From NCBI GenBank assembly GCA_965603825.1, contig CBFDEM010000021.1:1-64000 (forward strand): a stretch of DNA of 64,000 nucleotides. Direction: 5' to 3'. The notes below the pieces were generated by a model. It made no database searches and was not told where the DNA came from. It saw only the letters and a program-made list of their open reading frames with translations. The DNA is from Blepharisma stoltei ATCC 30299 (Eukaryota > Protista > Ciliophora). The position numbers and the translations under genes are program-made. This document shows positions 24,193-40,314 of this stretch, one piece after another; the stretch's first letter is position 1, and every line of letters begins with the position of its first letter.

Positions 24193-27100
24193 TTATGTTT
24201 CTCTAACTTCATATACGATACTCCTAAGTGCGAACGCAAACCTGAACAAATTCCACATATCTCTGCCTTTTTTCCGATACAGCAGACTTGGGTACTTTTT
24301 CCTTTGAAGGTAAAATCCTGCGAGCATAATAGCTATCCACCCAAAAACTAAAAAAGCATAATACGCTATAGGATTCCCACCAATCCCTAAATTTCAAGTT
24401 GAAATTAAAGCTAGCCAAACAACTGCGATTAAGCTCAGAACCTGCCACAAATGGAATCTCCCATAGTTATACGATTTAATTTTCACAATAATTGCAACAT
24501 AAATCATCATTATCACAATGAAAATTACTCCATGGCTGATATTGCTTGCTCTTTTCAAAGTCTTGGCTAATACAACCAGCAAAGTTTGAGCTACCGATTT
24601 CACCATCAAATAGCCAGGTATCGTTTTCACATGCAAGTTTCCCTGCAATTCCTGCCAAAGAGGTCTATAAAATACTGCTAGAGGCTCATAGACTAAAATA
24701 GCTACAAAAGAAATGATAGCATAAACCAAGTGACTGTCTTGCCAGCAAAATGCATAGCAGTCTCTCAAAAGAAAGCTATCTGTAAAACTATCTCCAATTG
24801 CCTCATCACAAAGGAACACATCAAGACAAATTGATATAAATGGCATAAAGCAAAGATTCCCTAATATAGGCATCAAGTTTTCAGCTAGAATATCTATATT
24901 TCTAAAAATCCATACATCTTCTCATCTATCATGCAATTTCAGTAAAACAACCACACAGAAAATAATTCATACCCCAATCCAAGCCAGCACAATGTCAACA
25001 ATTATATAGAATCCTCCATCCCTCAGCTTAAAAACTTCTTCAAGATCAACTGTCGATATATTGATAAACGTTGATATTAGTGAGGGTAAATAGTAAGGAC
25101 CCATAGAGGCAAATTGGAAGAACTCTATTGGTATTGTGATTGCTACAATAAAATCATCAACAGACATTTCTTGCTTTTCTCCAAAAATTTCGACTGGGAT
25201 ATTCCATCACTTCTGCCATATAAATCATGTTATGGCTGAAGTGATAGCTAAAACGATTAGGCAAAGCCCAACCATAAGTCCTCTTCCTTTAGAAAAAGTT
25301 TGTATATCTCGATCAGGGAAAGGGCATTTATCGTTTATTTCTCTTAAGTCGCTTGGTTTGGCTGATGTCCCATCAGGATAAATCAAGGGATTCAAAATAT
25401 ATATAAGATTTGTACTGAAAGGCTTTAAGTAGCCTACTGGGTAGATCGCAATGCTCCCATTTTTGTCGACCTTCATAGATTGAATGGTGTACATTTGGAA
25501 ATTTCTATCGTTACTCTCAGATTCAATAGATGCAGGGCCCATACACCCTTCAAATTTTGTAAGCCTTATTACTGACATTAATTTTCAAGGATCAGTATAA
25601 TCTTGGCCTTTAGTTATCATATAATCTAATGCCTTTGCAATAAAATAAACAGCATCATAGTAAGCGCAAGCATATAAATTAGGTTCTTTTTTATATTTAT
25701 CTAGATACCTACTAAACGCATCTTTTCCAACTTCTCCAACCCAATTAGAAAATACTAGTGTGGTCATTGACGCTCCGATCTCTAATCTTTTATGCAAAAA
25801 AGCGTCATTATTTGCAATGATATCAAAAATATCCCAGGTTGCAATATAAATATAGATATCTCCTCTTCTCAGTCCTACATCATAAAATTCTTCCAATGCA
25901 TATAGACACATTGGGCACTGAACCATCATTAAAACTAATCTTGCCCTCGAATTGTAAATTTCTTGAAACACATATTTATAGTCATTTATAGAGTTCCGAT
26001 CTAAATTCGGATATATCATTCTGGCGCTTTCTGCGTTAACAATATCAATTCCTGCAGCTTCCACAGTATTTTTTACAAGATTATAACTTGTCAACCCTAC
26101 AGTATTATTTGAATAAATTATTGCTACTTTTCTCCATCCCATGGCTCTTATAAACTGCACACAAGTGTTGTAAGCAAAAGGGGTGAGCATTCTGACATAC
26201 ATGGGGTAGTCCTTGATAGAGCTCAATAAGGTGCTACCGTTTATTGCTCCGACTGATGGAATTGTTATATTCGCTTGTTTAAAAAATACCAGTGAACCAA
26301 TCGCAACTGAAGAACCATAGCCTGATAGGTGTGCAAGGCCTAGCTTATCTATGTCTTTTTGATAGCAGGATTTAAGGAATGCGGCATTATAAATACTGAC
26401 TCCACAATCAAAGTTAAACATTTCCAATTGGAAGTTCAATAGGATCTCGCTGCCTTCATTGATTTTGTCTATACATATGTTTGATCCATAAGAGCTGTGC
26501 AGAGCTGTATAAACGTTTTCTGAGCCAGGATTCGTAATGCCTGCATTTATGCTTATAGGTAAGATTTTTCTATTAGACTTTGGTATAGAACTTGATTGAC
26601 CTAAAAATGTTAGATTGCCAAAAATAGACACGTTTCTATTGATAATTGTGCCTACAGTGATCCTTTCTCCATTTTGAATATTCACTATGGAAAATTTAGG
26701 GATCCGGTAGTGATTTGGCATTTCCAAATCAAGCAATCTTCTTATTTCCTTAGCGTCTTCTACATATGCTATTAGAGAAATAATCTCTTTTATCGATGAT
26801 TTTAAATATTCCTCTAATGAGTTCTCATATTCATAGCCTTTTTCACTAATAATCAAAGCTCCATCAATTTCGCATTGATATCCACTTTCTTGATTTAAAA
26901 CAATCCCATTTCCTCTTGTTAAAAGCTTTGCTTTTATCAATGATTTTTGCAAATCTTGTGATTTCTCATTTTCTAATAAAAAATAGTAAAGTGTTATTCC
27001 AGCACTTACAACAGAACGACTAACTAAACCATCAATGTCTGTTAAAGATGCAATGGTAAAACAATCAAATCCTGATGAGAAGACAGAATTTTCATTTTTT

Positions 27101-27555
27101 AGACTATAACTTTCCTCATCCAAGAATACTGCTCCCTGGGTTCAATTGAAATAGCTCAGCAACGAAGCAAAAGCGTCTATTTCTTCTGAGGGTGGAAGAG
27201 TAAGTGAATAAGTTGATTTCTCAACATATTTTGAATTCTTCTGATAAACTAAGTGAAATAAAGAATAGTCATCACAAATTTTAGAGAGAGATTGTTGAAT
27301 AGCAGGATCCCTTGACAAGTCTAGAAGGACGAGAGAATTTGGGTATTGTGAAATGCAGTTAATAATAGCAGAATAGCTGCAATTATGCCAATCTACTAGA
27401 TCACTGAAATTTTGAGTTAAATCTGATTCTAAGATTTTGAATCAAAAACTATTTATAGATTTGTATTCATTGCCTAGCTGTACAGCAATAATTTCAAGAA
27501 AAGCACAAATCTTGAACACTACAGCAAATAGAGTAATTAGGTGTGAGTTAACCAT
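24193..27555 (-). CDS. Venus-flytrap (ANF-receptor / periplasmic-binding type 1) multi-TM receptor-like protein, copy 1, 1120 aa
   Basis: Single frame with TGA=Trp; signal peptide; VFT motifs YPMYVRM, MGWRKVAIIY, YYDAVYFIAKAL, FEGCMGP...NDR; about 9 TM helices; TAA at 24193. Confidence 0.88.
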
Positions 27556-28695
27556 TATCCTTTTTATAATAAGGCAAATAAAAAATTATTAAAATCATAA
27601 TTTCTTAAATTAAAATAAAAAACTACAGCCTGTGTATATTGTTTTACAGTAAAACCTGCATTTCTAGCAAATTTTTATAGTTTAGTGTTTAGGGATCAAT
27701 ATTTACTCAACTCAAACATTTTTCAGAAAGATAAAGGTTTGCAAAAATTAATAAATTAAGATTCTTGATGCTATCATTATGTTGTAACTCAGAGCCTATA
27801 ATAAGAACAAAATTCCATAAGTGTCACTTTAATATATAGATTGCATTGGCAATTATGCCTCTAACACTAATCAAATAATGCTTAAAAGGTTAATATTTAA
27901 GTCTAATCCATAAGGAAGAGATCGTAAATTTTATTTTCTTCAAATATTAGAAGATGTGCACTCATATATTGCCTTAGCATAACTCTTTAATTATACTTCT
28001 AGCCTTCATGCCATAAGCTAGAAATTCGTTCTTAACAAAAATTTGACTCACAATTGTTAGACCTTCAATTGCTTCCAAGTTGAACTCTCTTTTCAACTAC
28101 CAAACTTTTGGTGAGTCGCCTTTATAATTTGCGACCAGAAGTTCCGTTGACTAGTTAGAGGTTAGGAATGCACTCCTGGCTGGCATTTATAGTTGCTCTA
28201 TTAACTTAAACTAATTCAATTCCAACAGAATTAAGCTGTTTGCATACCTTTTAAAAAGTCAATTTTAATCTCTTAAATTGAATTGATTATAAATGCATAA
28301 AGTTCTCTTTCTATTAATCTGCATCCTATTCTTTCTAAAATTCTGTGCATTTAAATATAAAAATTAATTCGAATTGCCTCATCTGCTAAGCTTATTTGAA
28401 AAAGAATATGCAAAATGGTGACGTCGATTTAAAGTTTATAATTAAAATGTGAAAAAAATCTAAGAAATGAATATTCGATTTAGGCGAATAATAATAAATA
28501 CGTCATTTAGCAATAAAGACTTAGCTTATTAGCTAACTTTTATACAAATCTTATTTCTTTTTAAGCTTAATTATTCCAAGCATCAAAAATCTCGAAACCT
28601 ATTGCTTTAATTTTGGCTTAAAATATTGACACTTTTATTAGACAAAATAAATCAAAAACTAATTTTGTCATAAAATTTAAAGCTTAATATTAAAT

Positions 28696-30029
28696 ATGGT
28701 TCACCAATTATCGATCTGCGTCTTCTTTATCCTTTTTGCTTTTTCCTATGGAGGGTCGTTTTCTTACTGCACAAATTTTATTTTAACAACACCTTACTTC
28801 GATTCAACGAATGTAAGGTTCAATAGCCAGATAAATGACGGTAAATATGTTACAACACACTATAACCAAAAAAGTTCTGTAGTATCACCTGCTGTGAGCT
28901 GTTCATCAACTTATATGAATGCATATCAATGGTATTTGGATGCAGATTATACTGGATGCACTTCGTTAAGTGACTTTGGGTTAGGGTTGTGGGTAAACTT
29001 TGAGTCAACGAAAGGGACTTTATTGATGAAGATTGGTAATTTTGGAGGGTACACAAATACTTATCAAGTAAACTCAGATGCTGATGGGACTTTGAAATTC
29101 ACGTTTAAAGTAATATCGGATAATATTGACGTTGATGATTTTTCCATATCTGTTCCATTGAGTAATTTTTTATTCAGATACTTGGACTTTACTTTTGTTT
29201 CATTGGATAGACAGCACTTTTGAAATTTTTATGCCAGGACAAGCTATGATTTCCAAGACAGCATCTGGTGCTTATCCCTTTGCCAAACCTGATAATGGGG
29301 ATTGGCAAATTGGCTATGGTATAAAGGCAAAGATTTATCAAATTTTAGGATTCAAATCGGCAACAATAAATACAGATTTTAGTATTATTACGTTATCTGA
29401 TGGCACAAACTCTCTCGATGTAAAAGTAACTTGTCCAACGACTTGTACAGACTCAGCTTGTCATCCGACTCAAAAATGTCTCAGCCAAACAAGCGACTGT
29501 TCTAATTGTGATACAACTGGGTGCTTGGCATGCACCACAAACACTCGTAACAAGGCAACTTACTGCAATATCATCACCTGCGCTGCACATTCTGTCTGCT
29601 CACCAGTTGGTGACTTCATGGCATGTGAGCATGGCTATTACCTTTATAAACCTTTATCTGGAGATGCCGTTTGTACCCGTAATTTTTAATTTAGAATGCA
29701 AAGACTCATGCACTTCTTGCGATAAAGGTAAAGGTTGCTTCCAATGTGCTGATGCTATTGCAAAAGATGGGACGACTTGCAGAGTCGATTCTATTGGCTA
29801 TTATGTCAGTCTTGAAGGCACAAATATCAAAATTGATTTTGGTAGTCCTCTTGTATCAGCTTTAAATATTGTCTCTCTTACAGCTAAGTCAAGTCAAGGT
29901 GTAGCAATTGATACATCTCAGTGGACTGTAAATGCATGCGCTGTAGGAGCAACAAGCTGCACTATCGTGACTAACTTGGATATCAATAAACTACCAATCA
30001 CTTATGACTTCGAGTTTGCTCAAGCCTAG
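28696..30029 (+). CDS. Secreted LamG/concanavalin-A-like plus Cys-rich (furin-like) repeat protein, copy A, 433 aa, 2 tiny introns
   Basis: Introns 29162-29177 and 29679-29694 (both 16 nt) join three track ORFs into 434 codons. Signal peptide, FGLGLWVNF and VPLNTWTLL (LamG-like), CxxC repeats, no TM or GPI-like tail. The domain call is from motif resemblance only. Confidence 0.85.
29162..29177 (+). other. 16-nt spliceosomal intron GTAATTTTTTATTCAG
   Basis: Explains the frame change; identical intron in the paralog at 32310-32325. Confidence 0.92.
29679..29694 (+). other. 16-nt spliceosomal intron GTAATTTTTAATTTAG
   Basis: Explains the frame change; removal gives VCTQCKDSC. Confidence 0.92.
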
Positions 30030-30137
30030 AAGGATAACTAATCTTTCTCTTTAATCCTTTGACTAATTAAATAATTAATAACTTCTTTACTTATAATTAA
30101 AGATATGGCATATAAAACTTAGCCAAAAGAGACTTAT

Positions 30138-30793
30138 TTATGCGTCTTCATCAATCATATATATTGTGCTTCTTATTTAGAACGAATTTAAATAATCCAT
30201 GGATATTTTTAACTTTTTTTCTATAGAGTAAACTTGGGTATTTTTTAAACTGCAGATAAAGTTCAGCTAGAACAATCATCCAGCTCCCAAAGCAACAAGA
30301 AATACTATAGACAGCAAGGCAAACTAAGCAACTGACCTCAGACTTAAAATTGACACAAATTAAATCTATCATAGTTATATGGCTTAATCCTTGATATAAC
30401 TCAACGACGAAAAAAAAGCGTTTATTTCTTCTGAGGATGGAAGATTAAGTGAATAAGTTGATTTCTCAACATATTTAGAATTCCTCTGATAAACTACACG
30501 AAATATAGAATAGCATCACAAATTATAGATATTGAAATTCAGGATTTCTTGATAAATCTAGGAGGACAAAAGAATTTGGGTATTGTGAAATACAGTTAAT
30601 AATAGCAGAATAGCTGCAATTGTGCCACTCTACTAGATCACTGAAATTTTGAGTTAAATCTGATTCTAAGATTTTGAATCATACAACTATTTATAGATTT
30701 GTATTCATTGCCTAGCTGTACAGCAATAATTTCAAGAAAATTACAAATCTTGAACACTACAGCAAATAGAGTAATTAGGTGTGAGTTAACCAT
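30138..30793 (-). pseudogene. Chimeric receptor remnant: 5' end of receptor copy 1 fused to 3' end of receptor copy 2
   Basis: 30398-30793 matches 27153-27555; 30138-30390 matches 33295-33587; several indels and frameshifts. Confidence 0.9.
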
Positions 30794-31840
30794 TATCCTT
30801 TTTATAATAAGACGAATAAAAAATTATTAAAATCACAATTTCTTAAATTAAAATAAAAAACTACAGCCTGTGCATATTTTTACAGTAAAACCTGATTTTT
30901 TAGCAAATTTTTATAGTTTAGTGTTTAGGACATCAATAATTACTCAGCTCAAACATTTTTCAGAAAGATAAAGGCTTGCAAAAATTAATAAATTAAGATT
31001 CTTGATGCTATCATTATGTTGTAACTCAGAGCCTATAATAAGAACAAAAATTCATAATTATCACTTTAAAATATATATTACATTGGCAATTATGTCTTCA
31101 ACACTAATCAAATAACACTTAAAAGGTTAATATTAAGTCTAATCCATAAGGAAGAGATTGTTAATTTTATTTTCTTCAAATATTTGATATTTGAAGATGC
31201 GCACTCATCTATTAGCTTTAGCATAACTCTTTGATTTATACTTCTAGCCTTCATGCCATGAGCAAGAAATTCGCTCTTATCAATAATTTTTATCACAATC
31301 ATTTGACTTTCAATTGCCTCTAGTTAAACTCTCTTTTCAACTACTAAACTTCAATTAAGTCGCTTTTATAGTCTACGACGAAGTTCCTTGATTAGGTCGA
31401 GGTTAGAAGGTACTCCTGGCTGACGTTTATAATTGCTCTATTAACTTAAACTAAAGCAGAATTAAGCTGGTTTGCATACTTTTTGAAAAACCAATTTTAA
31501 TCTCTTAAACTGAATTAATTATAAATGCATAAAATTCTCTTTCTATCAATCTCCATCCTATGCTTATTGAAATTCTGTGCATTTAAGTATAAAAATTAAT
31601 TCGAATTGCCGCATCTGCTAAGCTTTGTTGAAAAAGAATATGCAAAATGGTGACGTCGATTTTAAGTTTATAATTAAAATGTGAAAAAAATCTCTTATTT
31701 CTTCTTAAGCTTAATTATTCCAAGTATCAAAAATCTTGAAACATATTACTTGTAATTTTGGCTTAAAATATATAGACTTTTATTAGACAAATAAAATCAA
31801 TAACTAATTTTACCATAAAATTTAAAGCTTAATATTAATT

Positions 31841-33173
31841 ATGGTTCACCAATTATCGGTCTGCGTCTTCTTCGTCCTTTTTGCTTTTTCCTATGCAGGG
31901 TCGTTTTCTTACTGCGCAAATTTTATATTTACATTACCTTACTTCAATCCAAATGGTGTAAGATTCGACAGCCAGCTCAATGACGGTTTATATGTTATGA
32001 CATTCCCTACGCAAACGAGTTCCGTAGTTCTACCTACTTTGAGCTGTTCATGAATGCATATGAATGCAAATTCTTGGAGTTATACTACAGATTATTCTAC
32101 ATGCTGTTCGTTAAGTGACTTTGGTCTAGGGATTTGGGTAAACTTTGAGTCCATCGCAGGTTATTCGTTTATGACAATGGGAAATATATATGGAGGTGGA
32201 CCAACTTATTTACTGTCCTCAGATACAGATGGGACTTTGAAATTTAGATTTATAGATTATGCGGGTCAAACAGATAGCTTTAATCAGTTTACAATACCTA
32301 TTCCCATGAGTAATTTTTTATTCAGATACTTGGACTTTACTTGCGTTCCATTGGATAGGCAACACATTCGAAATTTTTATGCCAGGACAAGGAATCATTT
32401 CCAAGATATCAGTTGGTGCTTATCCCTTTGCCAAACCTGATACTGGAAATCTGTCGTTTGGCAATGGTATAAAGGCAAAGCTATATCAAATTTTGGGATT
32501 CAAATCGGCCACAATAAATACAGATTTCACTATCATTACGTTATCTGATGGCACAAACCTTCTCGATGCAACAGGAACTTGCCCAATGACTTGTGCAGAC
32601 TCAACTTGTCACCCGACTCAAAAATGTCTCAGACTAACAAGCGACTGCTCCAGTTGTAATCCAACTGGGTGCTTGGCATGCACCACAAGCACTCGTGTAA
32701 AGGCAACTTACTGCACTACCAAGATCTGCAATCCACATTGCATCTGCTCACCAGCTGGTGACTGCATAGCATGTGACTATGGTTATTACCTTTATAAGCC
32801 TTTATCTGGCGATATCGTTTGTATCGGTAATTTTAATTTAGAATGTAAAGATTCATGTACTTCTTGCGATGCAGATTGCTTTGAATGTGCTGATGCTATT
32901 GCAAAAGATGGGACAGCTTGCAGAGTCGATTCTATTGGCTATTATGTCAGTATCTCAGTTCCAAATATCCAGTTTGATTTTGCTCATCCTCTTGCATCAG
33001 CTTTAAATATTGTCTCTCTTACAGTTAAGTCAATTCAAGGCATAGCAATCGATACATCTCAATGAACTTTAAATACATGCGCTGTAGGAGTAACAAGCTG
33101 CACTATCGTGGCTAATAACCTGGCTGAAAATCAGTTACCAATTGACTTTGGCTTCGAGTTTGCTCAAGCCTAG
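31841..33173 (+). CDS. Secreted LamG/concanavalin-A-like plus Cys-rich repeat protein, copy B, 433 aa, 2 tiny introns
   Basis: Paralog of 28696-30029; introns 32310-32325 (16 nt) and 32827-32841 (15 nt); two TGA=Trp codons; ends FEFAQA-TAG like copy A. Confidence 0.85.
32310..32325 (+). other. 16-nt spliceosomal intron GTAATTTTTTATTCAG
   Basis: Identical to the paralog intron; explains the frame change. Confidence 0.92.
32827..32841 (+). other. 15-nt spliceosomal intron GTAATTTTAATTTAG (in frame, no stop codon)
   Basis: Homologous to the 16-nt intron at 29679-29694, one T shorter. Confidence 0.82.
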
Positions 33174-33294
33174 AAGGATAACTAATCTTTCTCTTTAATC
33201 CCTTTGACTAATTAATTATTAATAACTTCTTTACTTATAATTAAAATATGGCATATGATAGCTATTGGATTTTAAATTCTATTTTAAAAGAGAC

Positions 33295-36200
33295 TTATGC
33301 GTCTTCATCAATCATATATATTGTGCTTCTTATTGTAAAAGCAAATTTAAATAATCCATGGATATTTTTACCTTTTTTTCTATAGAGCAAACTTGGGTAT
33401 TTTTTAAACTGCAGATAAAATCCAGCTAGAGCAATCACCAGCCATCCAGCTCCTAAAGCAGCTAGAAATACTATAGAATTCCCACCAAACCCTATATAAA
33501 ACGTAGACAGCAAAGCAAGCCAAACAACTGCAATCAGACTTAAAAATTGCCACAAATTAAATCTATCATAGTTATATGACTTAATCCTTGAAATGATTGC
33601 GATATACGTCATCATAAGTATAACAAACGCTACCCCATGACTAATATCGCTTGATCTTTTAAGTGTTTTTGCTAATACTATCAATATTGTCTGTGCGACT
33701 GATTTTACCATCAAATATCCAGGCACTGCTTTTACATGCAAATTTTGCTGCAGTTCCTGTCAGAGCGGCCTAAAAAACACAGCAAGAGGCTCATATACTA
33801 AAATGGCTACAAATGAAATAATCGCATACATCAAATGTTCCCCTTTTCAACAAAAAGTATAGCAATCTTTTACTAAAAAACTGTCTGTAAAGTCTTCACC
33901 AATAGACTTATCACACAAAAACACGTCAAGACATATCGATATAAACGGCATAAAGCAAATATTTCCAAGCACAGGCATCAAATATTCCGCTATCACTCCT
34001 AAATTTCTAAAAATCCACAGTTCTTCTCACCTTTCATGCAGTCTTAATAAAACTATTACACAAAGAACTGCCCATATTGCAATGCAAACTAGTACAATAT
34101 CAGTAATAATCCAGAACACCCCATTTTGTAGCTTAATTACGTCTTCTAGTTCAATTGTGGACATGCTGCTTAAATTTGACAGGATTGAGCCGAATACAGA
34201 AAAATTAGGCCCCATTGAGACAAATTGGAAGAACTCTATAGGTATTGTTGCCCCCACAATAAAATCGTCTGTGGATATTTCTTTTTTTTCTTCAAGAATT
34301 TCTACAGATATATTCCACCATTTTTGCCATATAATAAAAGTTATTATAGAGGTAATCGCGAAGACCAAAAAGCAGAAGCCAAACATAAGCCCTCTTCCTT
34401 TGGCAAAAGTTTGGATTTCTCGGTCAGGAAATGGGCATTTACCGTTTATGTTTCGGATGTCGCTTGGCTTAGTCGAAGATCCATCTGGGTAAATTAAAGG
34501 ATTTGTAATGGATAATATTTGTGTGCTATATGGCTCTAGGTAGCCTACTTCATAAACTTCTGAAGTACTGTTGGAATTAAGCTTGACAGCTTGTATTGGG
34601 TAGAGTTGAAAAACTCTGTCATTGCTTCCTGGGTCAATAGAGATAGGGCCTGTGCATCCATTAGATTTTATCACTCTTATGGTAGACATCAGCTGATATG
34701 GGTCAGTATAATCATGGCCTCTATTTATCATATAATCTAAAGCAGTAGCAATAATATAAGCTCCATCAAAATATGAACAAGAATCAAAGTTTGCCGTGAT
34801 ATTATATTTTTTCCAATAGTCATTATATATGTTCTTCCCTATTTCTCCAACCCAGGCAGGATAAACGACTCTTGTCATAGAAACGCCGATTTCTAATCTT
34901 TTATGTGCATAGCCATCATTATCAGAAATAAAGTCTAATGGATCCCAAGTCCCTGCAAAAACATATAAGTCGCCTTTTCTTAATCCTAAATCATATAGTG
35001 ATTCTAGTGCATAGTTGCACAAAGGACACTGCAAGACCATAATCAATAGCCTTGCTTTAGAATTGACGATCCCTTGGAATAAGTTTTTATAGCTTTTAGT
35101 GGCTTCTCTGTCTAGATCTGGTGGGATTGCCCTTGTATTTTCTGGATTTATCAGCTCGATCCCTATACTTTCTGCAGCTGTCTTCATTAAACTGTAAGTC
35201 CAAAACCCTCAAGAGCCGTTTTCATATATAATAGCAGCTTTTTTTCATCCCATAGCTCTTAAAAATAGTATGCAGACGTTAAAAGCTACAGGTGAAACCA
35301 TTCGGACGTACATAGGATAATCTTTAGTTGAGCTTAATAAAGGGCTACCGTTTACAGACCCCACAGACGGTACCGTTATATTTATTTCTTTAAAAAATAA
35401 CTGTGAGCCAATTGTAACAGAAGAGCCATAAGCTGCTAAATGGGCAAGACCCAGCTTGTCTATATCTTTTGTAAAGCAGGATTTAAGGTAAGATTTATCA
35501 TAAATAGTGACCCCACAGTCAAAGTTAAACATTTGTAGCTGAAAATGTGATAAAATATCGTGTCCTTCATTAATCTTATCAATACATATATTGGCTCCTC
35601 ATGAACTTTGTAAGCCTGCATCGGTATCTGCTGAGCCAGGATTTGTGATTCCTGCATTTATACTTATAGGCAAAATCTTTTTACTGGACTTAGGGATTAT
35701 GGTTGATTGTCCTAAAAAGGTAAGTTTGCCAAAAATAGCCAAATTTTTATTAAAAATTGAGCCAGCAATAATCCTATTTCCATTTTGTATATTTACTATT
35801 GAATAACTAGGCGGGCTATAATGGTTTGGCATTTTTGTGTCTAGAATTGCCTTGATATCTCTGACATCTTCTAATGATAATATACTAAATATGAGCTCTT
35901 CAATTGAAGTTTTTAAATAATCTACTATTGAAGTATCGTATTCGTGGCCAATTTCTGTTATTATTATTGCTCCATCTATGGTGCAACCATACCCACTTTC
36001 TTGGCTCAGCACAATCCCACTTCCATTTGTCAATAATTTTGCGTTTTTCAATGAGTTTTGTAAATCTATTGATATTTCATTATTAACAAAAAAATAGTAA
36101 AATGCGATCCCAGCTCTTACAACCACCCCATTGACTAAATCTTTAATATCAGACAATGATGCTATTGTAAAATAGTCAAAATACGCTGAATAATTTAAAT

Positions 36201-36672
36201 ATTCAGCTTTCTGGTTGTATTTTCCCTTGTCCATAAAAACTGCTCCTTGATCTCAATTAAGATAGCTCAATAAAGAGAAAAATGCGGTAATTTCTGATGA
36301 AGGAGAAGGGGATAACGAATAGGTTGATGGTTCAAGGTATTTGGAGTGAGACTGATAGACTAGATGGAATAAGGAAAAATCAATGCATAATTGAGAAATT
36401 GATTGTTGGATAATGAGATTTGTGGAGAGATCTAATAGGAGTAAAGACTTTGGATGCTGTAAAATGCAATTTTTAAGGGCTGAGAAGCTGCAAATGTGTA
36501 ATTCTACTGATGAGTTAAAGTTTTGAAATATTTCAGGTACAAAGATTTCATATGGAAGGTTTTCTATGTATTCATAAGGGTTCTTAAAATCCACGACGAT
36601 AACTTCTAAAGCTTGGGAAAATTTGAAAAATTCAGCCCACAGAATGGATATACCAATGATAAACCAAGACAT
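33295..36672 (-). CDS. Venus-flytrap multi-TM receptor-like protein, copy 2, 1125 aa
   Basis: Five track ORFs in one frame, joined by TGA; full-length paralog of 24193-27555; TAA stop. Confidence 0.88.
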
Positions 36673-37611
36673 TTATAAATTCATAAAAAAAAATTTAAAA
36701 TAATAATCAGTTCTTTTTATCAGTAGAGCTCAAAATTTGAACGTTATGCATTCAGAAAATTAAGCAGATTATAATTATAAAGTTAATTTACCATTTGACT
36801 CGAAAATAATTAAATAGGCAGCCCAAAAAAGTTATTTAATTGATATTATTTCTGGCTATCATAAAAGTTTACAATAACGAAAGCTTCATCAGCTTCATTG
36901 AAGTTTTTTACACCTTAAAGCAACTGTAAAATTTCAGAGATCGATAAATTCGATAAGATTTATTTAGTGCTTTATTAGAGTGAAAACTCAAATCATCTCA
37001 GTATTTTATAAATATTCAACTTTTCATTATCTTAAAATGATGGTATACGCCAATAATGCTTATATTTGAAGACCTAAAATATATTCTTTTGCATTGCAAG
37101 TTGAATTGGAAATTTATATAACTCTAATTAGCGGCTCTAGCGTATTTATCTCGTCATAAACAGATTGTCTAGTCTTAGTCTTAGATTACTTATTTATTTT
37201 TAGAAAAAAATCTATATTACAAATTTTTGGGTTTTACTAATGGTTTATTGCTAATCAAGAGAGGAAGATTAGTCTGCAGATCAAGATAGCTCATATTGAA
37301 AATGAATAGATAATATAAGGCATTTAAGTAAAAAAATCGACTAAAATTGTCTTCAAGTCTTAGAGCCCATAGCTATAAGCTTTTCAGCCTTAAGCACCTT
37401 TATTCCTTAAAGCTAAATTTCTTTGAGAAAAATACGTAAGATAACTAATTTTATCATTAATCTGTTTGCTCCATATTGCAAAAAGTTTTGATATATAGCT
37501 ATATATTTAATCTATAAAAACTCAGTAATTTAAGTCATTTTCTACTATAATTGCCAATATTAACTATTTTGATAACTTATTATATATTAAGAGGAAAAAT
37601 TTATAAAAAAG

Positions 37612-40314
37612 TTAAAGCCATTTTAATCATTTATCATATATACTGAGCCTCTAAATGCAAATGCAAATCTAAATAGTCCACGCAAATCTTTACTTTTTTC
37701 CGATAAAGTAGGCTAGGATATTTTTTAATTTGCAAATAAAGACCTAACAGAGCAAGTACTAGTCATCCAATACTTAAAAAAGCAAGATATGCTATAGAAT
37801 TTCCACCAATACCTAGATAAAGTGTAGAGATTAAAGATTTAAGATAAGAGTATGGCCACGGCCCCATCGTTGCAAATTGAAAAAATTCTATAGGTATTGT
37901 GGCTGCTACAATTAAATCTCCTATAGACATTTCTTGCTTTTCCCCGAAAATCCCAGCAGGAACATTCCATCATCTTTGCCATATAAAATATGTAGTGACT
38001 GTAGTAATAATAAAAACGAAAAAAGAAAGCCCAAATAGAAGTTCTCGCCCTTTTGTAAAAGTGCGAATTTCTCGGCTAGGGAAAGGGCACTCACCGTTTA
38101 AGTTTCTTATGTCGCTTGGCTTAATTGATGTTCCATTAGCATAAATTAATGGATTTGTAATAGATAGCATTTTTGTGCTGAATGGCTTTAAATCTCCAAC
38201 TCAATAAATTTCTGTGTTTCCTTTGCTATCGACTTTAAGAGCTTCTATTGGGTATATCTCATAAATTCTATCATTGCTATCAGGATTGATTGAGACAGGG
38301 CCTGTGCATCCAACAAATTTTGTCTGTCTTATTATTGACATTAACTTCAGTGGATCTGTATAATCTTTTCCAGTGTTTATTAAATAATCTAAAGCCTTAG
38401 CAATCAGATATGCACCATCATAATATGAACAAGTGAAATCGTTTACCGTGTCATTCGTTTTTAAAATTCACTTTAAAGCACCCTGACCTATTTCTCCTGT
38501 CCATCTTGGTGCATTAACTCTAGTCATAGCTACCCCAATTTCTAATCTTTTGTATAAATAAGTGTCATTGTTAGAAATATAATACAGAGGATTAAGGGTT
38601 CCTGCAAAAACATATAAATCGCCTTTTCTTAATCCTAAATCATATAAATATTCTAACACGTAATTGCACAAAGGGCACTGAATTAATATTATTAATAGCC
38701 TGGCTTTTGAATCAATAACTCCTTGCAGTGCAGATTTTGCAGCTTTAATGTCTTTTCTTTCAAGATTTTCTGGTATAATTCTTGAACTTTCTGAGTTTAG
38801 TAGCTTAATTCCTAAACTTTCAGCAGAAACCTTCATTAAATTATATGAAGAACTTCCTCATATGCTATCCTCATATATAATGGCAGCATTTTTTCACCCC
38901 ATAGCTCTTAAAAATACGATATCAATGTGCAATAGAAAAGGTGTGAGCAATCTCACATACATTGGGAATTTCTCTTTAGAACTTAAAAAAGGGCTACCAT
39001 TGGCAGCTCCTATTGAAGGAATCACTATGTTTGATTCTTTAAAAAAATTGTATGTACCAATCGCAACTGAAGAGCCACCTGGCATTATATGTGCAAGGCC
39101 TAATTGGCTAATGTCTTTATTAAAACATGTTTTTATATAAGCTTCATCAAAAACAGTAGCTCCACAGTCAAAAATAGCCGTACTAATATGGAAATTCTGT
39201 AAAATATCATGACCTTCATTAATTTTTGCTATTGAAGCAAATGCACCAAGTGAGTCAATATCTGCTGAATCAGTGTCAGAGCCGTCTGGGTTTGTAAATC
39301 CTGGATTTATACTTATTGGTAACACTTTTTTGTCAGATTTAGGTATAGTACTTGAGTTCCTAAAAAAGTTATATTGCCTGATATAACTAAATTTCCATTC
39401 GTTATTGATCCAACAATCACTCTTTGGCCATTCTGTATATTTATAATAGAAAACTCAGGAGAAGCATAATGTTTTGGCAATTTTGAGTCAAAAAATGTTT
39501 TGACGTCTTTTGAATTTTCAGCTTCTAGTACTAAAGAAATAATTTCTATGATTGTAGATTTTAAATATTCTTGTGATGAAGCGTCAAATTCATGGCCTTT
39601 CTCTGCTATGATCAAGACTCCTTCAGTATCACATTCATATCCACTTTCTTGATTTAAAATGACTGCACTTCCGCTTGTTAACAATTTTGCATTTTTTAAG
39701 GCAATTTGCATATTTTTTGATTGAAGGGTGTTAAGGAAAAGATAGTAAATGGTAGCTCCAGTCCTTGCAATAACTCCATCAATTAGGCCATTAGTATCTG
39801 TCATAGTTGAAACAGTATAATAATCAAGCTCGGATAAATATTGCAAAATTTCATCTTTAAAATACTTAGTATCCTCGTTTAAAAAGACAGTACCTTGACT
39901 TCAATTAAAATATCTTAATAATGACAAAAACGCACTTAAATAATCAGAAAATGAAGAAGTCAACGAGTAACTTCATTTTTCTAAATATCTGAAATTATTC
40001 TGAAATACTAAATGTATTAAAAAATAATCCTGGCATATTTGAGAAAGCGAATTTTGAACTATTAGATCTTTTGAATAATCAAGCAGTAGTGAAGAGTTTG
40101 GGTGTTGAGAAATACAAAATAAAATAGAGGAAAAATTGCACTTGTGCCATTCTACAGAGGCATTGAAAATTGTTAATAACTCAGGTGAGGGAAATTCACT
40201 TCAAAGCGATTCTTGGGAATCGCCTGGGTAGTCCACCACAATGGTCTCTAAGGAATTGCAGAATTCAAAAAATATAATAAGTACAACAGCTGCTTTAAAA
40301 GCTGATAAAGCCAT
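37612..40314 (-). pseudogene. Venus-flytrap receptor copy 3, probable pseudogene
   Basis: Paralog with ATG at 40314; single-base deletions at ~39357 and ~37693, and an in-frame loss of ~224 codons of the TM region at 37824-37834. Confidence 0.8.

Follow-up and report, generated by a model that had tools for sequence, protein, structure and literature searches.

The first 64,000 nucleotides of contig CBFDEM010000021.1 (C21:1-64000, forward strand; assembly GCA_965603825.1, 41.46 Mb in 64 contigs) from the ciliate Blepharisma stoltei ATCC 30299, called the window from here on, contain two neighbouring genes, A and B, for predicted secreted proteins with an N-terminal domain of the Laminin_G_3 (LamG)/ConA-like type. 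We consider it reasonably probable that A and B represent tandem paralogues within a multigene family seen in Blepharisma alone, and that their pattern of divergence is explained by a mosaic history together with fast-evolving LamG loops rather than by a simple selective burst in young duplicates.

Uneven divergence between A and B

Divergence between A and B is concentrated in residues 26-155 (the variable core, Table 1), where 61/129 aligned positions differ. A preliminary description of this DNA, made from its letters alone, had counted about 63/131 differing residues in clustered patches, and the patches that it listed are indeed present. At the nucleotide level, A and B are 61-76% identical in the core and 82-89% identical in the rest of the gene, and divergence along the units is strongly uneven (chi-square over 100-column bins, P=3e-19). 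In the flanks, identity per 100 columns ranges from 76 to 99% on the 5' side and from 79 to 92% on the 3' side; the mean non-coding divergence between the units is 0.096 and is itself uneven (P=8e-5), and A and B do not differ in a 50-nt tract around the stop codon. The DNA encoding the signal peptide differs at 4/75 positions. With flanks as patchy as these, the earlier statements that the 3' flanks and the signal-peptide DNA are nearly identical and that the pair is young were overstated. One 420-bp block, a candidate recent gene-conversion tract (Table 1), holds the four longest identical tracts (53-74 nt), and a longest tract of this kind has a probability of P=0.008 under a uniform spread of differences.

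Maximum-likelihood (ML) estimates of nonsynonymous divergence (dN), synonymous divergence (dS) and their ratio omega were 0.367, 0.626 and 0.59 for the core (codons 26-156) and 0.155, 0.221 and 0.70 for the rest of the gene. Bootstrapping gave a dS of 0.51 (95% interval 0.34-0.75) in the core vs 0.23 (0.16-0.33) in the rest (P=0.0015), and no difference in omega (0.72 in the core and 0.63 in the rest); across estimates, omega ranged from 0.59 to 0.76 in the core and from 0.63 to 0.70 in the rest. Fourfold sites at conserved residues had changed at 8/25 positions in the core vs 8/89 in the rest (P=0.007). As dS is raised along with dN and omega is equal, the variable patch represents a deeper overall divergence and not a peak of omega. 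The preliminary description had argued that coding DNA diverging faster than its own flanks points to diversifying selection, and this argument fails for A and B since the dS of the core is up as much as its dN. An omega well below 1 combined with an equal rise of dS in exon 1 had been named there as the observation that would speak against selection, and most of this was found: dS is raised, and omega is the same in core and rest.

Conflicting genealogies of core and remainder

A third copy, C, is located at 629 kb of contig C60, 23 kb from the contig end, and is decayed, with 13-bp, 11-bp and 1-bp deletions (three frameshifting) and lost cysteine codons. The segment containing it (C60:626847-633552; loci L023 and L024) corresponds to the B-X2 region and the X1 promoter region, copied in scrambled and partly inverted form, X1 and X2 being the genes next to A and B. 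For the 3' two thirds of the gene, the topology is (A,B),C, with 48, 53 and 101 sites unique to A, B and C, respectively. The core gives a star tree, with 37, 58 and 40 unique sites and a pairwise dS of 0.43-0.47 for all three pairs, and B is the longest branch of this star. A transcript from the MMETSP collection (P0006) groups with the branch of two other B. stoltei proteins, P0004 and P0005 (61% identity), and not with A/B (41%), so that no orthologue of A/B is at hand for dating the duplication by another species. A and B are therefore tandem duplicates with segments of differing divergence and conflicting genealogies, as in concerted evolution, in which single conversion tracts are candidates only.

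Tandem duplication of a 3.2-kb segment

The A/B pair arose by tandem duplication of a 3.2-kb segment with breakpoints inside X1 and X2, two paralogous Venus-flytrap receptor genes, and with a 7-nt microhomology at the junction (Table 1). A single microhomology-mediated duplication with these breakpoints accounts for the whole layout. The transcript contigs from four runs of one 2022 study leave 30057-30991 uncovered, a stretch that includes the X2' and X1' remnants.

Table 1. Positions of genes A and B, of the duplicated units and of neighbouring features in the window.
Feature	Position	Strand	Description
Gene A (public record P0002)	28696-30029	+	exons 28696-29161, 29178-29678, 29695-30029; 433 aa
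Gene A introns	29162-29177 and 29679-29694	+	16 nt each; stop codon TAG
Variable core of A (codons 26-155)	28771-29161	+	N-terminal two thirds of the LamG_3-like jelly roll; B counterpart 31916-32309
Gene B (public record P0001)	31841-33173	+	exons 31841-32309, 32326-32826, 32842-33173; 433 aa
Gene B introns	32310-32325 (16 nt) and 32827-32841 (15 nt)	+	stop codon TAG
Gene B in-frame TGA=Trp codons	32051-32053 and 33063-33065	+	n=2
Tandem duplication unit A	27146-30397	.	5' part of X1, 1.1-kb divergent promoter region, gene A, X2' fragment; from self-BLAST and unit alignment
Tandem duplication unit B	30391-33594	.	X1' fragment, promoter region, gene B, 3' end of intact X2; from self-BLAST and unit alignment
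Duplication junction	30391-30397	.	7-nt microhomology; TTGATAT at the junction, TTGAAAT in both parents (27146-27152, 33588-33594)
Candidate recent gene-conversion tract	27392-27812	.	420-bp block, ~98% identical to 30629-31049; spans silent X1 remnant
X2' fragment	30100-30397	-	3'-terminal remnant of Venus-flytrap receptor gene, homologous to 33298-33594; silent
X1' fragment	30398-30823	-	5'-terminal remnant of Venus-flytrap receptor gene, homologous to 27153-27585; silent
X1	24193-27555	-	~1120 aa; signal peptide, ANF_receptor (Venus-flytrap) domain, C-terminal multi-pass membrane region; head-to-head with A
X2	33295-36672	-	1125 aa, paralogue of X1; signal peptide, ANF_receptor, multi-pass membrane tail; tail-to-tail with B

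Gene models, expression and protein layout

Both genes were translated with code 4, and the models of A and B are identical letter for letter to the public B. stoltei proteins P0002 and P0001. The transcript contigs covered 28715-29974 and 31871-33181, i.e. the gene bodies only, leaving the A-B intergenic space uncovered. Exactly the four introns of A and B were absent from these contigs, which shows transcription of both genes and splicing in agreement with the models. Models, public records and spliced contigs thus bear out the initial view of two intact copies of 433 aa each, and it was also correct that they share an identical intron 1 and have a difference of one T in intron 2. Introns of 15-16 nt and UGA as a Trp codon are described for the published somatic genome of B. 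stoltei ATCC 30299 (PMC9942806). The genes A, B and pseudogene C are only 77-81% identical to each other, yet not a letter differs between their copies of intron 1; as this intron is identical even in a decayed copy, intron identity is no measure of age, and the tiny introns seem to be strongly constrained and poor clocks. The promoter regions of the two units also carry a short transcript at low depth (minus strand, 31145-31453 and 28000-28234), and its poly(T) loose end at 31145 hints at a poly(A) tail on the minus strand. No conserved open reading frame (ORF) was found in this promoter-region transcript, and the stretch that it covers is the most diverged part of the flank (76-85% identity).

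The proteins A and B are 68% identical overall and share the same layout, in which a signal peptide is followed by a LamG_3/ConA-like jelly roll (residues ~20-235), a cysteine-rich stalk resembling EGF/furin (~240-345) and a small end domain of beta-sandwich type (346-433). The predicted signal peptide is the sole strongly hydrophobic stretch and no hydrophobic segment follows it, which agrees with the secretion proposed at the outset. All 25 cysteines of A are conserved in B, and there are 0 and 1 N-glycosylation sequons in A and B, respectively. Both are probably extracellular binding proteins.

Fold of the N-terminal domain

When the full proteins were scanned, Pfam Laminin_G_3 (PF13385) gave 27.4 bits with A and 25.2 bits with B, just under the gathering cut-off of 27.6 bits, and paralogues gave 17-25 bits or no score. 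Exon-wise Pfam scans of A and B returned no matches because intron 1 splits the LamG domain; Pfam gave no match on the stalk of A or B either. A family profile made from four members was searched against 1.84 billion representative proteins and matched more than 100 distant proteins through profile positions 65-200 (E 1e-13 to 1e-3); in all of those checked (8/8), Laminin_G_3 was present at the matched place with 104-138 bits. An AlphaFold2 model of the LamG domain obtained with 44 sequences had a predicted local distance difference test (pLDDT) score of 73.6, a predicted template-modelling (TM) score of 0.76 and about 15 strands; a full-length fold from a 4-sequence alignment had been poor (pLDDT 46) and was replaced by this domain fold. 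All Foldseek matches in the PDB that were examined are ConA-like jelly rolls (probability 1.00, TM 0.55-0.60). Profile homology, AlphaFold model and Foldseek matches agree with each other and with the fold first suggested for this domain, which on these predictions is a divergent Laminin_G_3/ConA-like jelly roll; the word lectin, if used for A and B, would be a label for the fold and not for a demonstrated activity. For the end domain, the structure search in the Atlas gave generic small beta-sandwich likenesses only (T9SS sorting-domain-like and CopC-like, TM 0.5-0.6).

Probable selection on the LamG loops

In the LamG domain of A and B, omega is 0.36 for strand codons and 1.26 for loop codons, the latter not being significantly above 1 (P=0.24), and in the strand-vs-loop mapping the differences between A and B are biased to loops (49% vs 32%, P=0.018). 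An independent pair, P0004/P0005, is encoded by two genes 83 kb apart on contig C64 and displays a uniform dS of 0.23-0.39, a LamG omega of 1.0-1.2 and a loop omega of 1.26 (not significantly above 1). For the sister subfamily to which this pair belongs, gene models were built for eight loci, six of them intact and two decayed. Under the GY+F3X4 model, the partition omegas in this subfamily were 1.16 for LamG loops, 0.84 for LamG strands, 0.93 for the cysteine-rich stalk and 0.60 for the end domain (below 1, P=0.008). The codon-model code written for this work reproduced the M0 likelihood of IQ-TREE exactly (-6101.519). Among the six intact paralogues, M2a was strongly preferred over M1a (2dlnL 110.6, twice the log-likelihood difference), with 17% of sites at an omega of 4.5; of 29 sites with a posterior above 0.9, 18 map to LamG loops or the linker, and the end domain has one. 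This preference was stable on ungapped columns and when each segment was analysed with its own ML tree (2dlnL 27-58). Different segments of the genes yield different ML topologies, which points to recombination among paralogues, a known source of false positives in site models. Positive selection on LamG loops is likely for the family, and for the pair A/B omega is not significantly above 1. Of the diversifying selection on LamG loops proposed in the preliminary description, the argument drawn from A and B thus did not hold, and the idea itself is likely to be right at the level of the family, as judged by the site models on six sister-subfamily paralogues.

Weighing of alternative explanations

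It is unlikely that selection on the LamG loops after duplication, acting alone on a young pair with a single genealogy, made the core diverge. The loop omega of 1.26 compared to 0.36 in strands, the loop bias of the A/B differences and a family-level M2a signal that is strongest in LamG loops would all be expected in this case, and the equal length of the branch to C in core and rest (0.155 vs 0.160) fits an acceleration limited to A+B. However, dS is 2.2-2.8x higher in the core, and selection on protein does not raise synonymous divergence; in addition, fourfold sites at conserved residues are 3.5x more diverged in the core, the omega of the core (0.59-0.76) equals that of the rest of the gene, and sites marking A+B as sisters are absent from the core.

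Slightly less likely again is relaxed constraint, by which one or both copies would be drifting to pseudogenes like C, with the core as the least constrained part. Both ORFs have stayed intact despite about 250 substitutions, with in-frame indels only, although the flanks contain many indels, all cysteines were kept, the strand omega is low, A and B are both transcribed and spliced, and drift leaves the raised dS unexplained. These observations stand against an omega of 0.6-0.76 along the whole gene, a similar omega on the branches to pseudogene C and a family rich in decayed copies (C and the loci L010 and L008 described below), as drift would predict. It is highly improbable that a recent tandem duplication was followed by gene conversion in which a distant third paralogue overwrote the exon-1 core of B (or A). 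B does stand apart in the 3' half of the core, with 32 unique sites vs 17 and 18, and an 88-bp upstream segment is common to A and C and absent from B. Nevertheless, the 41-Mb somatic assembly contains no paralogue nearer to the core of B than A (49% identity vs at most 41% for the others), and the three cores are about equidistant at synonymous sites.

The genealogy and the patchy flanks are read most simply as partial homogenisation between the units that spared the core. Tandem duplication of the 3.2-kb segment would have come first, and the two units would then have evolved as a mosaic. Repeated gene conversion or unequal exchange may have kept the promoter region, the DNA for the signal peptide and the 3' two thirds of the gene alike between the units, while the LamG core would have escaped homogenisation and retained its deeper divergence. 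Framework strands of the LamG domain are under purifying selection and the loops change at or above the neutral rate, and some loop and linker sites appear to form a positively selected class in the sister subfamily. If the putative role in extracellular binding is correct, the LamG loops probably set ligand specificity.

Several points weigh against partial homogenisation combined with fast-evolving loops. Conversion events were not directly seen, and the core offers about 76 synonymous sites, at which a deeper genealogy is indistinguishable from a locally higher mutation rate. The three branches of the core (dS 0.215-0.255) are somewhat longer than those of a pure star of the inferred age. 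The evidence from site models comes from a sister subfamily that is only ~35% identical to A/B, and the recombination evident among these paralogues can inflate tests of this kind. At positions homologous to the selected ones, differences between A and B are weakly enriched (50% vs 34%, P=0.14), and no omega for A/B is significantly above 1.

Family range and genomic context

Searches were run with single exons, with one stop-free stretch comprising exons 2-3 of B and the in-frame intron 2, or with the public records P0001 and P0002. Counts in the somatic genome reached at least 22 family loci for the LamG exon and at least 65 for the end domain. Tandem or subtelomeric arrays hold many of these loci, and many are decayed. 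Among the broken loci, L010 (C64:383740-387159) is the tandem neighbour of the intact P0004 gene, to which it is 90% identical; it contains 4 stops against the exon layout of this neighbour, and a truncated public protein of 216 aa (P0010) corresponds to it. L008 (C52:634648-638082), read against the exon layout of the intact neighbour, is off in length by two bases and contains 8 stops, and it has a truncated public protein of 218 aa (P0015).

The profile search gave 16 close relatives, and those looked up were all from B. stoltei, from an MMETSP transcriptome or from a metagenome fragment; beyond distant LamG domains, no relatives outside Blepharisma were found among the 1.84 billion representative proteins. 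The searchable literature contains no described ciliate LamG family of such architecture, in accordance with the preliminary description, which had recognised none. The family is therefore undescribed and lineage-specific, limited to Blepharisma as far as the data reach. In five other B. stoltei proteins of 541-939 aa (P0017, P0019, P0022, P0027 and P0033), the stalk and the 90-aa end domain stand behind other, longer N-terminal regions, so that this C-terminal module is common to several architectures.

The window begins with a telomeric array, 2.3 kb of CCCTAACA repeats at 1-2330, and this CCCTAACA array at the contig start places A and B 26-31 kb from the chromosome end. The neighbouring gene X1 matches Pfam ANF_receptor with 68.3 bits, and X1 and X2 are 60% identical over a 518-aa X1 query piece holding the Venus-flytrap domain. 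Of the Venus-flytrap receptor family, the genome contains at least 83 loci (from 253 first-look candidates), with X1, X2 and X3 at 24193-40314 in the window and a cluster at C21:775-921 kb. Receptor loci are interleaved with LamG-family loci on C21 (861-905 kb), and on C16 the two families come within 8 kb of each other. Common paralogue-rich regions or a functional link may underlie this co-clustering. We attach very little probability, the least of all the ideas considered here, to the proposal that LamG paralogues are diversified secreted ligands or adaptors read by the co-amplified, interleaved Venus-flytrap receptors, with selection against conversion keeping the cores distinct, in the recognition of prey, microbes, self or mates by the ciliate.

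Comparison with known systems

With Laminin_G_3 and ConA-like lectins/glucanases, A and B have in common the profile homology over about 110-150 residues and a predicted jelly-roll beta-sandwich. They differ in scoring below the gathering cut-off and in residues 20-90, which form a family-specific extension that is hardly alignable, and the combination of LamG, cysteine-rich stalk and conserved 90-aa end domain was seen only in Blepharisma. The best Foldseek matches were clostridial NTNH and the neurotoxin Hc-N domain, the lectin domain of Trypanosoma cruzi trans-sialidase and agrin LG domains (E 1e-7 to 1e-5, TM 0.55-0.60 by query). Sequence identity to these is 7-13%, which makes it a likeness of fold only; their other domains are absent from A and B, and nothing in A or B suggests a toxin function.

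In major histocompatibility complex (MHC) class II genes, conversion homogenises the introns flanking exon 2, whereas this ligand-binding exon stays diverged. Families of this type resemble A and B in that the exon for the binding domain, putative in A and B, is more divergent than the neighbouring non-coding DNA, in old synonymous sites of that exon, in patchy divergence and in conflicting trees of segments. They differ in that A and B are paralogues in a ciliate somatic genome and not alleles, and balancing or diversity-preserving selection is unproven here.

Gamone 1 (blepharmone), a secreted mating glycoprotein of Blepharisma, is like A and B in secretion, which for A and B is predicted. 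Gamone 1 has regions that vary between species; in B. stoltei it is encoded by an ORF of 305 aa with no UGA codon and a UAA stop, it has a homologue in Stentor, and it carries 4-6 N-glycosylation sites, with six in strain ATCC 30299 (PMC10892320). In contrast, A and B end in TAG, B has two UGA codons and relatives outside Blepharisma were not found. The possibility that A or B is gamone 1 was rejected on length (433 vs 305 aa), sequons (0-1 vs 4-6) and taxonomic range, a distinction that was made by description and not by sequence comparison.

The CxxC-rich repeats of the stalk recall VSP-type proteins of Giardia and furin/EGF-like cysteine-rich families of protists. Two of the longer relatives (P0017 and P0019) gave Pfam VSP scores below threshold, and UniRef labels some members as EGF-like or TNFR-Cys. 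Unlike VSP-type families, A and B have no Pfam match in the stalk and no membrane anchor, and the stalk is not their main variable part.

Significance

As a caution on method, a coding region that is more divergent than its flanks is on its own no proof of selection where duplicates exchange sequence. Blepharisma is a member of one of the earliest-branching ciliate classes, and to our knowledge almost nothing is known about its extracellular recognition proteins. Birth-and-death evolution, partial concerted evolution and probable positive selection on the loops of a lectin fold come together in the family described here, which provides concrete candidates for recognition of prey, microbes or other cells, adjoining an equally expanded family of Venus-flytrap receptors.

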